64,000 bases of DNA from Macrostomum lignano. Lineage: Eukaryota. The notes below the pieces were generated by a model. That model saw nothing but the letters and a program-made list of their open reading frames with translations, searched no databases and was not told the origin of the DNA. Every line of letters begins with the position of its first letter. The first letter of the stretch is position 1. The position numbers were made by a program, and so were the translations under genes. Of this stretch, positions 19,384-24,958 are shown in pieces. Location of the stretch: positions 1-64,000 of the forward strand of contig NIVC01002889.1 in the NCBI GenBank assembly GCA_002269645.1, given 5' to 3'.

Positions 19384-22254
19384 TTAGTTTTAGTACTTAG
19401 TAGTTAGTACTTTTCTCAACCGAATACTTAGCTTCTTGCAAGCAAATTTCAGAAACAGAACATATTTAAAAACTGAACAAGCAAGGCTGTGAGTTCCAAA
19501 CTGATTATGATACTGAAATAAACAATATGAATAATCTCTTTTTATTATAATTTTAAGGCTTTTCTATTTTGCGTAAATTTAAGTTTTTGCTTCATCGTGC
19601 AATATATTCGTCATCATCATCATGCAATATCATGGCTTCGCAATATCTATGCGCGCAGTTCCATTTCGAAATTTAAAGACAAAGTTATATGCGCAAGCAA
19701 TAGCATTTTTCGGCAATACAACCAGCGACCTCTCCTTACTCTGGCTAGGGCCTATATCATTCTCATGATTTATTACATTCGATCCACTCACTATTTTTTA
19801 ATTTCTGTGAATCGCCTTTCTAGTTTTACTTTGTCCAGACTAGGCCTATATGGCCCATAACTCAATGCCATGCGATGCCGATGCAGCCCTGTATGGGCAT
19901 GGCTGCAGACTGCACAATTTAATAGATTTATTGGCACTTTGGAGCCATGGAAAAATGATTAGGCCTATTAAGTACCAAAATCATCCTACCTTAAATATAT
20001 TTTTCTCATTTAGCCTAAGAGTGAAATGGATTAGGCCTAACTAAATCTAGGCCCTTATCCAAATTTATTGGCTATAGCCCTATGCCCCTACCCCCTGTCC
20101 CTAAAAAATAGATATCGCTTAACTATCACTAAATGACTCAATAAGTGCTAGCTGCTAGGTGTAATAATATTTTTCAAATAGACAGTGTCAAAGTAGGTCA
20201 AAATAGTGTCAAAATAACAAAATAGTCAATTATTTGTTAGAGAAAGTTAGCCTATGCCATGTCTATGTCTATTTTCCAATATTGTATTAGTTTAATGCTT
20301 AGTCCCTTAGGCTTAGTATAGTTTGCCCCCTAAAAATTTTCTGGATCTACAATCAAAATAATAATAAGCATAATTGCTTAGCCCTATTCAAATTCAAATA
20401 TGCATGTTTCTTAAAAAAAACTTCTCTTGACTTAAATAGGGCTAACAAGTAAAGTTGTATTTCATTAAATTTTGTAAACTAATTTATAGGGGGGCCTAAC
20501 CTAACTAGGGCCTATGGCCTAGGCCTTGAAATGTCAAAAAAAATTTTTTTAATTTAACAATGAAATTATCTATTGACTATATTAGGCCTATATATGATCT
20601 ACTTTTTGCCATTTGATAGTTAACTTTGCCTAAGAAAAATTGTTACTTTGCATGATCATCGTCATTAAAAGATTAATTGGGCATTTAGGTAGATTCAAAT
20701 ATATCTAGTTGTAACTTCTCTTCAGACTTATATTTTTGTTCTTTCTTTGCATCTTTGGTCATTGACATTGCCACTAACATTAGCAATGAATTTGTCGTTA
20801 ACTCACAAAATTGTTAATGCAAATTAATTAATCTGTTAGGCCTAATTCAAAAAAATCTTAATTGCAGTCTGTTAATGTTAATGGAAAATCTTAATGCTTA
20901 TTAATGCTTATTAATTGATTAATGCTTATTAATAGACTGGTGCCCAACATTGCCAAATGACTATTTTACAAAAAGGCTTTTAATAAAAGGTTTTTGATAA
21001 AATTGTTATCTATTAAGTACTAGTACTATCAATGTATCATATTACCAATTTGTAATAAAGTAGGAATTTTTTTAGGTTAAAATTAGACTTAGACCTATAA
21101 TGTTTAAAAAATGGACAAAGTATTTATTTGACAAAATTGCATTTAATAGGCCTAAAATAACCTAGTATATTAATTATATTCCATGTTCCTTCTTTAAATA
21201 TTAAAATTATTTATTAAGTCTTGATAGCCCTTTTATAGCCAATGGCCATTATAATAAATAGTGTAGCATAAATTGACCTCCTTATAGTTCAGAAAGCAAC
21301 ATACATATTGGAATTTCCTAATAAAGAATACTCATACAAAATTGGCAATTAACAATTGTTGGTGCAAATTTTGGTTTACAAAGCTATTTATATGCTAAAA
21401 CAGTTGTCTATTAGTATATGATCATTTTTAATCTGATTTTAAAGGGCTTTCAATAATAAAATAGAGTAGAATGAATTATTTCGCTAATAAAAAACTAACA
21501 ATAAGCTTTGAATTAAAGTGTGATATATAGACTAGTATATATTAGGCATGTTTTGTTTGTGATGTAACCTAGGAAATGATAGCTTATAGAGCTATGGCTG
21601 AAGGTACTAATGCCAGGGTAGAAAGAGATCAGATCTCACCTTCCCAGGGGCATTAGACCTAGATAAAGAATTGGTAGCTTGTATTATAGTTTGATAACAA
21701 GGTCCCACTGTTTGATCATAACTATGGACAGAGTCTTGAAAGTATAGACTATTTAAAGTATATGTAGTTTTGCCACCACCATAGCACTACTATGCTAGGC
21801 ATCTAAAAAGTATCTTGACAGTATTTAGAATGAGGTCCCTTGCATAAGGGGCTTCTAATCTGCGCAAGGTCAAGACTCCCTGATTTAGCTAGGTTTGAAA
21901 TAAAAGGAGAGTTCAAATAAATAATGATTTGACTTCCATCTTCTGGCAAGCTATAGTGCTATCATCAGAAACAATAAGGAATTGGCTTCTATTGATTTAG
22001 GCTCTGTGCACAGGTTTTAGAATACATTTGTTTGCAAGTACCATATGCATATAGTTGCACATACTTTACTATACCTGAAATCTCTACAATTTGCCAATAG
22101 TTTCAGTTTTGTATCCCTGCAGCCCTAGCTTTCTCACTAGCCTGCATGCTTAAAAGATAAATAAATCAAAGCAGGACAACTGGGTTATGATTTTCACCTA
22201 ACAAGTAACTTAGCTACATATATTACTTGAGAATGAATAATTGAATTTTTGCAA

Positions 22255-22375
22255 ACCAGGATTTGGATCCCAATGGTCAATCCTAGGATTTTCAAATCCT
22301 AGACAATTTTGATCCTAGGATTTGGGCCTAATTCTAGGATTCTAGGATCCTAGGATCCTAGGATTATATGCCCTA
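22255..22375. mobile_element. Decayed hAT-type MITE end with ATCCTAGGAT subterminal repeats
   Basis: About seven (A/T)TC(C/T)TAGG(A)-type motifs, four of them perfect ATCCTAGGAT, ending in TGCCCTA. This resembles ATCCCGGGAT...CCCTA MITE ends. Confidence 0.45.
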
Positions 22376-22799
22376 TTTCCCAGCAATACAACAAGGGTAC
22401 TTGTCATTTTTAATGCATATCAGCATATATCCTAGTATATATAATATAGTGGAAAAATTGTGTCAATGACACATTTTTTTAGTTCTGGTATACAAACAAT
22501 TTATTGTATTTTTTTCTGGCATTAGACCTAGTGTATATTAATACATGATCCAAACTTTGGTTGGCCCTTAATGGTATAGGCATAGTTTGATATACTAAGT
22601 ATAATCTGGTGCAGGAAAGGGAGCTACATTGGGCATGGTTTAAAGTCTAGGCCTTATCTGCAATAGGAATTGATAGTAGGCTACTTATTTACTTTTACTT
22701 CTATATCTTTTAAATCTAAAAAAAGCGACTATACTGCACTATATAAGTAATCCAACACTGCCTAAAATCATTGTACTAGTTAGCTAGCATCAGGAAAAC

Positions 22800-24130
22800 T
22801 ATTGGGTATAATATCTAATTGTCCTGGTTGACTACGTCTACTAGTGGGATAGATATAAGAATAGACCACTGTCTCAATATGTTTTTTGACATCTCTCTGT
22901 AGAAGACTATATTCATTCTTAAGAATTGGGTGTGATTTAACTTTTTTAGTGTCAAAAACTTGAAACTTGGTTGGTTCTTGATGAATATTCAGAAGCTTTT
23001 GATTTTAGTCTTCTGAGTTTATAATTGCTATTCCGTATCTGTTGCAACTTTCCTAGTCATTTCTTAGTTCACCTTCACTTGTCTCTGTTCTCTCTCTCTC
23101 TCTCTCTCTCTCTCTCTCTCTCTCTCTCTCTCTCTCTCTCTCTCTCTCTCTCTCTCTCTCTCTTTCTCTCTCTCTCTCTCTCTCTCTCTAGCTCAATCTT
23201 GTTATTCTTATCTCTCTCTCCCTTGCTGCCTTCTGATTGGCTCTCCATTCTCACCTCTCTTTAGTCGTGCACTCCACCCCTCTCATTATTATCTTCAACT
23301 CAAACCCCCCTGCAATTTAATGTCATATAAATATACTGGTTTGGGCCCTGCACCCACTTATTGGCTCTTTATCTTACTTATTCAATTTAACATCTAATTT
23401 AGTTCTAGTGTTTTTAGTCTTATATTCTTGACAGTATCCTTTGTCATAGTTAAGAATTTTTATGTCAGTGCTCTTGCAAAGCTTGTTTAGCATTTGATAG
23501 AGGCTTAAGTTTTTTGTGACAGATAGGTGACTTGGGCTTCATTGGTAAACTGATAATAAGCAGAGATAATTTCATGGCAAATTTTGTTGGTACCTCTATG
23601 TTGTTCTAGCCTATACAATGTCTAACTTAACTGTTCTATGGATGCTTGAAGGTGAAAGTTCTTAATGCTTTTAGGTAAAACTAGATAATGTATAAACCAT
23701 AGCTTAAGGCTTCTTGCTAAGCTAGATTAAGTTTGTACTTACTGGTATTGGTGATACAATTCAAACTATTTTGCCATTGCTCATGCCAGAGTGTTATTAG
23801 CTTTCTTGTGGATTTCCTTCACCATTCTCTAGTGTTCCCAGTTCTTTCTTGCTATCAGAGATAGTAAGACCTAGGATATGAGTACACCAACCATTAACTA
23901 AACTGCATGTTTGATTTCCTTGATTCATCTCGAGAGGTATATTGTTAGTGTTGGTTATTTACACAAATTTGATATTTGATTAAGCATTGTATTTCACTTG
24001 GATTGCAGGCAAAGATGCTTGGGAGTTTAAACTTGGCAAACCTGGGAACAATGCTAAGTTGTTGGTAGGCTTGGAGGAATTCATTATCTAGCTAGATCAT
24101 TAGTTCTCACATTTGAAGTGGCCAGCTGAA
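22800..24130 (-). mobile_element. Decayed Penelope-like retroelement (N-terminal and pre-RT region)
   Basis: Stop-interrupted translations appear in PLE order: NEFLQAYQQLSIVPRFAKFKLPS, QEALSYGL, LNKLCKSTDIKILNYDKG, ED*NQKLLNIHQEPTKF..HPILKNE..YIYPTS..SQPGQL. Confidence 0.7.
23087..23190. repeat. (CT)n microsatellite interrupting the PLE relic
   Basis: Direct reading of the sequence. Confidence 0.98.
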
Positions 24131-24958
24131 CTAAACTCAGGATGTCAAAATTAAAGTATTAAATTTTCATATACTATCCTATTTTGAATGTTTTATTTTG
24201 TACTACCACAGTACCACTGTTATGTGTGATTTTTCTGCCATTATCTAAACGTTTTGGTGCTTTTTCTGGTGTCATTAGACAGTTAGAACAATATTTTTGT
24301 AGATTATTTTGTCAATAAAAGAAGCAAATATTTAATTTTAGCCAGTCCTTAATATTTATTCTTTAAAAAGTGCAAAATGCCTTGGGGATATGAAACAAAT
24401 AATGTTTTTAGACATCTTGTAGGCCTTATGCCTGAATTTAAAGTCATGTTAAGAATTGCACATTTAGGTGATTTTTTAACTTGGACTAAATTTCAATCTT
24501 TGAATATTAGTTGTAAAGACCATTTTTAGTATATTATAATTTAATAGATGCTAACTAATAATAAGGATCTTTGATCTGACAACCTATGAGGCTAACTAGC
24601 TCAGTGGTAAACGCATATTACTCTTGCGTCACAACCCTTGATATGATCTAGATAAATTTGGGGCTTGTGCACAAAATTGTTGGCCGATGGGTTGTCGTTG
24701 CGATTCACAACCAATATGTGCCAACCTCCAAGGCACAGGAAGTGTACACGCCTGACGATAAGAAAGCCAGGGCTTATGTACACGCCAAAATCGATGCGCG
24801 ATTGCGCGAAATGGCCCAGTTTGAATGCAAATGTAACAGCTGTCTATGGCCAAGTAGAACAGCTTTGCACTGGCCCTAATTCAACAAAAAGCGGCTAAAA
24901 TCTCACACAAAAAAGCTAGATAGCGACATATTTGCCAAAACCTGCCCGCAGCAAAGCT

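Follow-up and report, generated by a model that had tools for sequence, protein, structure and literature searches.

The DNA analysed here, called the window, is a 64-kb stretch of contig NIVC01002889.1 from Macrostomum lignano, and its encoded genes identify it as animal DNA. Its central feature is a non-coding block at 19,880-24,611 (4,732 bp, GC content 32%; edges set by CpG positions) that is nearly devoid of the dinucleotide cytosine-guanine (CpG). The block is flanked by a minus-strand gene, with open reading frames (ORFs) at 14,985-16,482, and by cullin-2. These two genes diverge, and the block is the intergenic DNA between them. The cullin is encoded by three exons at 24,959-25,771, 26,343-26,846 and 27,806-28,366 (Pfam PF00888). 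Its first exon had no protein match in the search, and the best protein match of the third is from Priapulus, at 48% identity.

CpG sites are dense through 19,879 and again starting at 24,612. Between these positions there are only 11, located at 20116, 20660, 20796, 21482, 21863, 22726, 22835, 23034, 23266, 23931 and 24250. The number expected is 124 from base composition, or 109 at the observed/expected ratio (o/e) of 0.87 found in the low-GC DNA of the host, and the Poisson probability of 11 or fewer is 3e-33 at 109 expected. The o/e of the block is about 0.09-0.10, and approximately 90% of its CpGs are gone. Each 1-kb tile of the block has a CpG o/e of 0.03-0.18, compared to 0.5-1.0, mostly 0.7-0.9, in the remaining AT-rich, non-tandem tiles of the window. 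Once tandem arrays are excluded, all of the largest gaps without a CpG that the window contains fall within the block. Both edges are abrupt; at the right edge, CpG resumes 347 bp upstream of the cullin ATG (24,959), with a jump in density in less than 100 bp. The CpG-erased block is a genuine and statistically extreme feature. A preliminary description of this DNA had reported a sharply bounded, CpG-erased domain with about 11 CpGs and a return of CpG approximately 350 bp before the cul2 ATG, and the counts given here confirm its extent, number and distance.

The loss is specific to CpG. Compared to host low-GC DNA, GpC is unaffected while CpG is depleted (GpC o/e of 1.56 in the block and 1.48 in the host), and the loss is confined to the block. 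This agrees with the earlier proposal of a sharply bounded, CpG-specific process, plausibly a silencing mark. The block is composed of four sub-blocks (Table 1). These are unlike each other in composition and share one CpG-specific deficit, which argues for a process that acts on position rather than for the import of a single element. The dinucleotide profile of sub-block D is vertebrate-like and shows the classical signature of CpG deamination.

Table 1. Coordinates and composition of the CpG-depleted block, its parts and its immediate surroundings.
Feature	Position	Strand	Details
Left flank, AT-rich, CpGs kept	19384..19879		GC 35%, o/e 0.94, 15 CpG sites at 19,421-19,879
CpG-erased AT-rich non-coding domain	19880..24611		11 CpGs, o/e 0.09, GC 32%
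Sub-block A (TAGGCCTA cluster)	19,880-21,200		GpC 1.80, CC/GG 1.61, CA/TG 1.03, TA 1.01, CpG 0.10
Sub-block B, unique sequence	21,201-22,269		GpC 1.62, CC/GG 1.21, CA/TG 1.12, TA 1.04, CpG 0.07, AG/CT 1.23
Short palindromic array, ATCCTAGG(AT) units	22280..22366		4 exact ATCCTAGGAT copies, overlapping inverted repeats
Sub-block C, unique sequence	22,371-23,059		GpC 1.11, CC/GG 1.25, CA/TG 1.09, TA 1.09, CpG 0.17
(TC)50 microsatellite	23089..23189		97% pure
Sub-block D	23,261-24,611		GpC 1.32, CC/GG 1.17, CA/TG 1.20, TA 0.91, CpG 0.08, AG/CT 1.18
Right flank, cullin-2 upstream/5' region	24612..24958	+	CpG o/e 0.87, GC 46%
First coding exon, cullin	24959..25771	+	Pfam Cullin PF00888, E = 2.7e-37, profile positions 1-236; CpG o/e 0.91

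In GC content and in its very high GpC, the left flank matches sub-block A. Possibly it is an unmethylated island with a regulatory role. Within it, approximately six GCAAT/TGCGCAA-type half-sites occur in a run at 19,570-19,720 (cgtgcaatat, catgcaatat, tcgcaatat, tgcgcaagcaat, cggcaatac), and by its motifs this run looks like a bZIP/C-EBP-type regulatory cluster. The left side of the flank is abutted by an (AGT)101 microsatellite that is 98% pure (19,081-19,383). The left flank was also considered as an intact copy of the block, but local alignment scores of 34-38, compared to 37 +/- 4 for shuffled sequence, indicate no homology. At the other end, TAGCTCAGTGGTA sits exactly at the right edge (24,590-24,640) and fits the tRNA A-box consensus. 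No tRNA was found at this A-box-like string (24,598-24,610) with ARAGORN or in Rfam at E <= 5, and a B box is not visible.

The block encodes little that can be recognized. Outside of the TC repeat it contains no ORF longer than 64 codons, and a six-frame search at E <= 1 found no Pfam family, two low-complexity chance matches aside. No terminal inverted repeat (TIR), long terminal repeat (LTR) or target-site duplication was detected in the block. A blastn search found no second copy in the 64-kb window, where the TC microsatellite is the only match. Searches of plasmids and phages gave no match, and a metagenome locus scan found nothing. A low-score tandem repeat (TRF) scan for decayed arrays gave only four tiny arrays. 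The block contains no tRNA or Rfam family, and its miRNA-like hairpin matches are all sub-threshold. One such hairpin lies at 20,377-20,446, where a 14-nt inverted repeat (TTAGCCCTATTCAA / TTAAATAGGGCTAA) encloses a 40-nt spacer; its miRNA-family match reaches 24 bits, where the gathering score is 60. A reverse-transcriptase-like stretch, 'LIVSDDSTIACQ', on the minus strand near 21,900-22,000 is without statistical support. The block was also considered as an intron, with a GT close to 19,891 and an AG close to 24,598 falling roughly at its two ends, but the acceptor lacks a pyrimidine tract and CpGs are retained in the other introns. The preliminary description had spoken of hypermutated transposons and of a Penelope relic. 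No transposable element protein domain, TIR, LTR or second copy in the window supports the former, and the six-frame Pfam search did not confirm the latter.

The rest of the window mostly retains its CpGs. The cullin exons and intron have a CpG o/e of 0.84-1.20, and the exons of a TRPM channel (34,860-48,000) have 0.87-1.12. Because CpGs are retained in these gene bodies, any methylation is not genome-wide and would be sparse and targeted. The first exon of the cullin has no gene-body methylation footprint. Other genes in the window encode an NPY/NPF-type neuropeptide precursor (8,226-8,738) and an OCRE-domain protein (Pfam). The exception among the genes is the cytochrome-b5 gene region, which has an exon on the minus strand at 4,832-4,978 and a CpG o/e of 0.27 at 4,120-4,830. 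This second CpG-poor stretch has 3 CpGs in 711 bp, a GC content of 25%, TpG/CpA of 1.36 and TpA of 0.80. It carries the classical deamination signature and shows that such decay occurs elsewhere in the genome too. The cytochrome-b5 gene in or beside which the stretch lies is unusually AT-rich, and the genes around it are otherwise richer in GC. Approximately 30% of the 64 kb consists of minisatellite and microsatellite arrays, with some 30 different minisatellites that have units of 12-64 bp and extend up to 2.1 kb. Many are within the cullin and TRPM introns; examples are found at 40,489-42,620, 29,854-31,483, 43,881-45,654 and 47,951-49,105. Several minisatellite units have no CpG, and the 2.1-kb array of a 36-bp unit at 40,489-42,620 has 0 CpG and a TpA o/e of 0.1.

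Several TA-rich motifs are overrepresented in the block. Counts were compared to 300 dinucleotide-preserving shuffles, and the observed and shuffled values are 5 and 0.13 for TAGGCCTA, 18 and 1.95 for GGCCTA, 4 and 0.01 for ATCCTAGGAT, 29 and 8.9 for CTAGG, 7 and 0.9 for CCTAGG, and 39 and 21.6 for CTAG. The positions listed in the preliminary description are correct to within 1-2 bp, and its statement that such motifs are strikingly frequent holds for TAGGCCTA, CTAGG and ATCCTAGGAT but not for CCCTA, which is unenriched (10 observed and 9.0 in shuffles). Sub-block A is rich in TAGGCCTA, a palindrome of 8 bp, and in the variants TAGGGCCTA, TAGGCCCTTA and TAGCCCTA. This cluster extends over 19,746-21,150, with two copies in the CpG-retaining left flank, has A/T flanks, and shows neither periodicity nor an extended consensus. 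It could derive from a factor-binding site, a decayed (GGCCTAN)n seed or short element ends. The TAGGCCTA sequence class crosses the left edge of the block, where only the CpGs change.

The same motifs had been interpreted as CG>TA versions of transposon motifs. The postulated CG precursors, CGGGCCCG and ATCCCGGGAT, occur 0 times in the 64 kb. Moreover, TAGGCCTA is found beside intact CpGs at 5,038, 19,841 and 38,060, and TAGGGCCTA likewise at 19,746. Native occurrence of TAGGCCTA in CpG-containing DNA is one of the outcomes that the preliminary description itself had named as counting against its proposal.

Repeat-induced point mutation (RIP) leaves a characteristic dinucleotide bias. The RIP substrate index, (CpA+TpG)/(ApC+GpT), is 1.30 in the block and 1.22 in the host low-GC tiles, compared to a RIP criterion of <= 1.03. 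The composite RIP index is -0.24 in the block and -0.26 in host low-GC DNA, compared to a criterion of > 0, and TpA/ApT in the block is 1.07. Over the whole block CA/TG is 1.10 +/- 0.05, not depleted and no higher than the 1.08 +/- 0.03 of host low-GC DNA. The RIP-like hypermutation suggested earlier is not borne out by these values, which are at host level. TA is 1.02 in the block and 0.89 in the host. Second-order shifts are also present: AG/CT is 1.17 vs. 1.04 in the host, CC/GG 1.30 vs. 0.93, GA/TC 0.76 vs. 0.90 and AA/TT 1.04 vs. 1.12. The k-mer signature of the block correlates with that of the host at r = 0.51 (K=3) and 0.40 (K=4), compared to 0.83 and 0.64 between host tiles.

The fate of the lost CpGs was considered both in total and by context. 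Compared to host low-GC DNA, the totals per 1000 are +27.9 +/- 7 for TA, -25.5 for CG and -4.4 +/- 6 for TG+CA. These crude totals agree with the earlier claim that former CpG sites now read TA, since the gain of TA about equals the loss of CpG and TG+CA has not risen; the contexts, however, do not match. Across 16 flanking contexts, in a comparison with 41 host low-GC tiles, the correlation between lost NCGN and gained NTAN is r = -0.43, which is in the 1% tail of a simulated direct CG>TA model, and that between lost NCGN and gained NTGN+NCAN is r = +0.79. TA was gained in contexts that are poor in CpG in host DNA. CTAG has gained 4.4 per 1000, which is 7 times the host supply of CCGG (0.59 per 1000). 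By this context test the TA-rich motifs thus belong to the local sequence class and are not converted CpGs, but the test has low power and takes the ancestor as host-like. When host tiles were mutated in silico, CG>TA gave CA/TG of 1.16 and TA of 0.97, and CG>TG/CA gave 1.34 and 0.82; the block (1.10 and 1.02) is nearer to the former profile. A forward simulation of CpG hypermutability reached an equilibrium CA/TG of 1.24, TA of 0.98 and CC/GG of 1.11. The preliminary description had stated that ordinary deamination stops at TG or CA. This is true for short times only, and over longer times ordinary transitions turn TG and CA into TA. A reversible chain limited to transitions would distribute the missing CG mass over TG, CA and TA in the proportions r:r:r^2, with r as the GC>AT bias, and by the same derivation about half of the removed CG mass is predicted to end as TA at a GC content of 32%.

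With middling confidence, we read the block as the footprint of long-term, local germ-line methylation of CpG at 5-methylcytosine (5mC), followed by deamination and AT drift, between unmethylated flanks. A native intergenic block would have been heavily CpG-methylated in the germ line over a long time, and its flanks and the neighbouring gene bodies would not. Spontaneous deamination of 5mC would then have removed approximately 90% of the CpGs (CG>TG/CA), and ordinary GC>AT transitions would have turned many of the TG/CA products into TA, the surroundings being AT-rich. Methylated chromatin would end at the two abrupt edges, on the right at the active cullin-2 promoter and on the left at the CpG-retaining, possibly regulatory island. 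Methylation may have been guided to the block by an ancient repeat or transposon insert that can no longer be recognised. The sequence itself shows the CpG-specific erasure, its edges, its evenness over the four sub-blocks and the second-order dinucleotide shifts; we infer methylation as the cause, DNMT1 and DNMT3 in the genome, and whatever directs methylation to the block. M. lignano, a free-living flatworm, is reported to have kept both DNMT1 and DNMT3, with a low overall level of 5mC (PMC11292947, PMC10658182, PMC9246332).

Several observations lead to this reading. The loss is CpG-specific, with host-like GpC and undepleted CpA/TpG. Four sub-blocks that differ in GpC, CC/GG and CA/TG are all CpG-free (0.07-0.17), and the TAGGCCTA class continues past the left edge with only the CpGs changing. 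The side-effects predicted by the simulation are all present, namely increased AG/CT and CC/GG and decreased GA/TC and AA/TT. Among compositional features, AG/CT rather than TG/CA has been reported to correlate most strongly with CpG loss driven by methylation (bioRxiv 10.64898/2026.09.02.747768). The CA/TG of sub-block D (1.20) approaches the simulated equilibrium (1.24), and the stretch at 4,120-4,830 (o/e 0.27, CA/TG 1.36) shows deamination-type decay elsewhere. There is also precedent in animals that methylate repeats and not gene bodies, which include a chaetognath, early-branching nematodes and ctenophores (PMC12460157).

Other observations weigh against local methylation. CA/TG in the block (1.10) is not above that of the host (1.08), where the model gives approximately 1.24 at equilibrium and 1.34 after recent decay, and TA is above host (1.02 vs. 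0.89). A TA gain near the CG loss without a rise of TG+CA is 2-2.5 sigma off the simple equilibrium model. The deviation depends on an assumed ancestor like host low-GC DNA, and we regard it as an unexplained residue, not as a sign of a new mechanism. It comes from the motif-rich sub-blocks A-C, and sub-block D fits the methylation model. The CC/GG excess (1.30) exceeds the 1.11 of the model, and the k-mers of the block are less host-like (r = 0.51) than host tiles are mutually (0.83, K=3). An o/e of 0.09 is below that of typical methylated invertebrate domains. No DNMT gene lies within the window, and the block has no demonstrable transposon or repeat identity by blastn, Pfam and TIR/LTR scans.

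The block could instead have been CpG-poor from the start, as one or more insertions (a degraded transposon, a decayed CpG-less array or horizontally acquired DNA) on which no CpG-directed process acted. We regard this as unlikely, though it is favoured by edges that are sharp at base-pair scale, by a k-mer signature that is only partly host-like (0.51/0.40 vs. 0.83/0.64 for K=3/4) and by the lack of an overall TG/CA excess. This genome also makes many tandem arrays, some of them CpG-free, as at 40,489-42,620, and simple repeats divide the sub-blocks, as is often the case at element ends. Such an origin, however, needs four compositionally unlike sub-blocks to have each been CpG-free independently, and mutation should have restored CpGs in an array decayed beyond recognition. 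The block shares the unusually high GpC of the host, the TAGGCCTA class spans the left edge, and no TIR, LTR, target-site duplication, coding relic, decayed array, or plasmid or phage match was detected. Another alternative is an assembly artefact, which would be a chimeric join, a contaminant, or systematic errors of the consensus where CpGs are methylated, in a long-read assembly that was not polished. The abrupt compositional edges, the partly host-like oligonucleotide signature and the failure to find a relative of the block by window blastn, metagenome locus scan and plasmid/phage searches would fit an artefact. We consider it scarcely probable: a GpC o/e of 1.56, like the 1.48 of the host, is a level unusual for most genomes, the TAGGCCTA motif class spans the left junction, and the GC content of the left flank equals that of the block. 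Without ORFs longer than 64 codons outside of the TC repeat the block is not bacterial, and it matches no plasmid or phage. Base-calling errors would not cleanly strip 90% of CpGs.

The mechanism favoured by the preliminary description was a RIP-like or deaminase hypermutation, targeted to a domain or to repeats, that takes CG to TA directly or rapidly. Possible routes are CpG and CpA methylation of the DNMT3 type with deamination, or a targeted AID/APOBEC-type deaminase. In its favour, the TA gain (+27.9 +/- 7) approximates the CG loss (-25.5) without a TG/CA surplus, host tiles mutated CG>TA in silico lie nearer to the profile of the block than CG>TG/CA tiles do, and TpC is somewhat depleted (0.76 vs. 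0.90). These totals presuppose an ancestor like host low-GC DNA. The RIP indices are negative and equal to those of the host, CpA/TpG is undepleted, and the gain of TA anticorrelates with CpG supply (r = -0.43) where that of TG/CA correlates with it (+0.79). The CTAG gain is 7 times the CCGG supply, intact neighbouring CpGs mark TAGGCCTA as native, and the CG precursors postulated for the motifs do not occur in the window. Neither blastn in the window nor Pfam revealed a duplicated or transposon sequence, and sub-block D resembles ordinary deamination. Hypermutation is very unlikely here. It is equally doubtful that an animal germ-line process takes CpG to TpA faster than two independent background transitions and leaves CpG-free, TA/CTAG-rich, sharp-edged islands; the sole support for such a process is the agreement in totals of TA gain with CpG loss, without a TG/CA surplus, in sub-blocks A-C.

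Returning to local germ-line methylation, the block is most probably a methylation footprint of a known kind whose location is less usual, namely a small island of intergenic DNA among genes that look unmethylated. If 5mC is present, the block is a compact and readily assayed case in which an animal without a gene-body footprint targets 5mC to non-genic DNA within sharp bounds. If it is unmethylated, a 10-fold CpG deficit without a TG/CA surplus would require a new explanation.

Several known systems share features with this locus. In the vertebrate landscape, CpG density likewise jumps at the promoter edge, here approximately 350 bp upstream of the ATG, and the profile of sub-block D is similar. 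In contrast to vertebrates, only 4.7 of the 64 kb are in this state, and the introns and other intergenic DNA keep their CpGs. Fungal RIP also produces AT-rich, sharply bounded blocks with normal-to-high TpA/ApT (1.07 here). RIP, however, depletes CpA/TpG and acts on duplicated DNA, whereas here CpA/TpG is at host level, only CpG is lost, the composite index is negative and no duplicate is seen in the 64-kb window. Mosaic germ-line CpG methylation gives a bimodal CpG o/e in Ciona, honeybee and oyster. As in these animals, depletion at this locus is CpG-specific, occurs in a discrete domain beside CpG-normal DNA and is accompanied by increased AG/CT and CC/GG. Their depleted domains are usually housekeeping gene bodies with an o/e of approximately 0.3-0.6, whereas this block is intergenic, non-coding and at 0.09, and the gene body of the housekeeping-type cullin is undepleted.

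The remaining comparison is with transposon-only methylation (Paraspadella gotoi, early-branching nematodes, ctenophores; PMC12460157). Targeting of 5mC to non-genic DNA without gene-body methylation is reported in few animal lineages only. Platyhelminths are among the trans-splicing lineages, and transposon-only methylation has been reported for ctenophores, chaetognaths and nematodes but not for platyhelminths (PMC12460157). The block differs from those cases in having no transposable element identity by six-frame Pfam search and TIR/LTR scans, although it may be a fully degraded element, and in that its proposed methylation is read from the sequence. It resembles them in the arrangement itself, in which the genes have no footprint and a silent, non-genic block has one.

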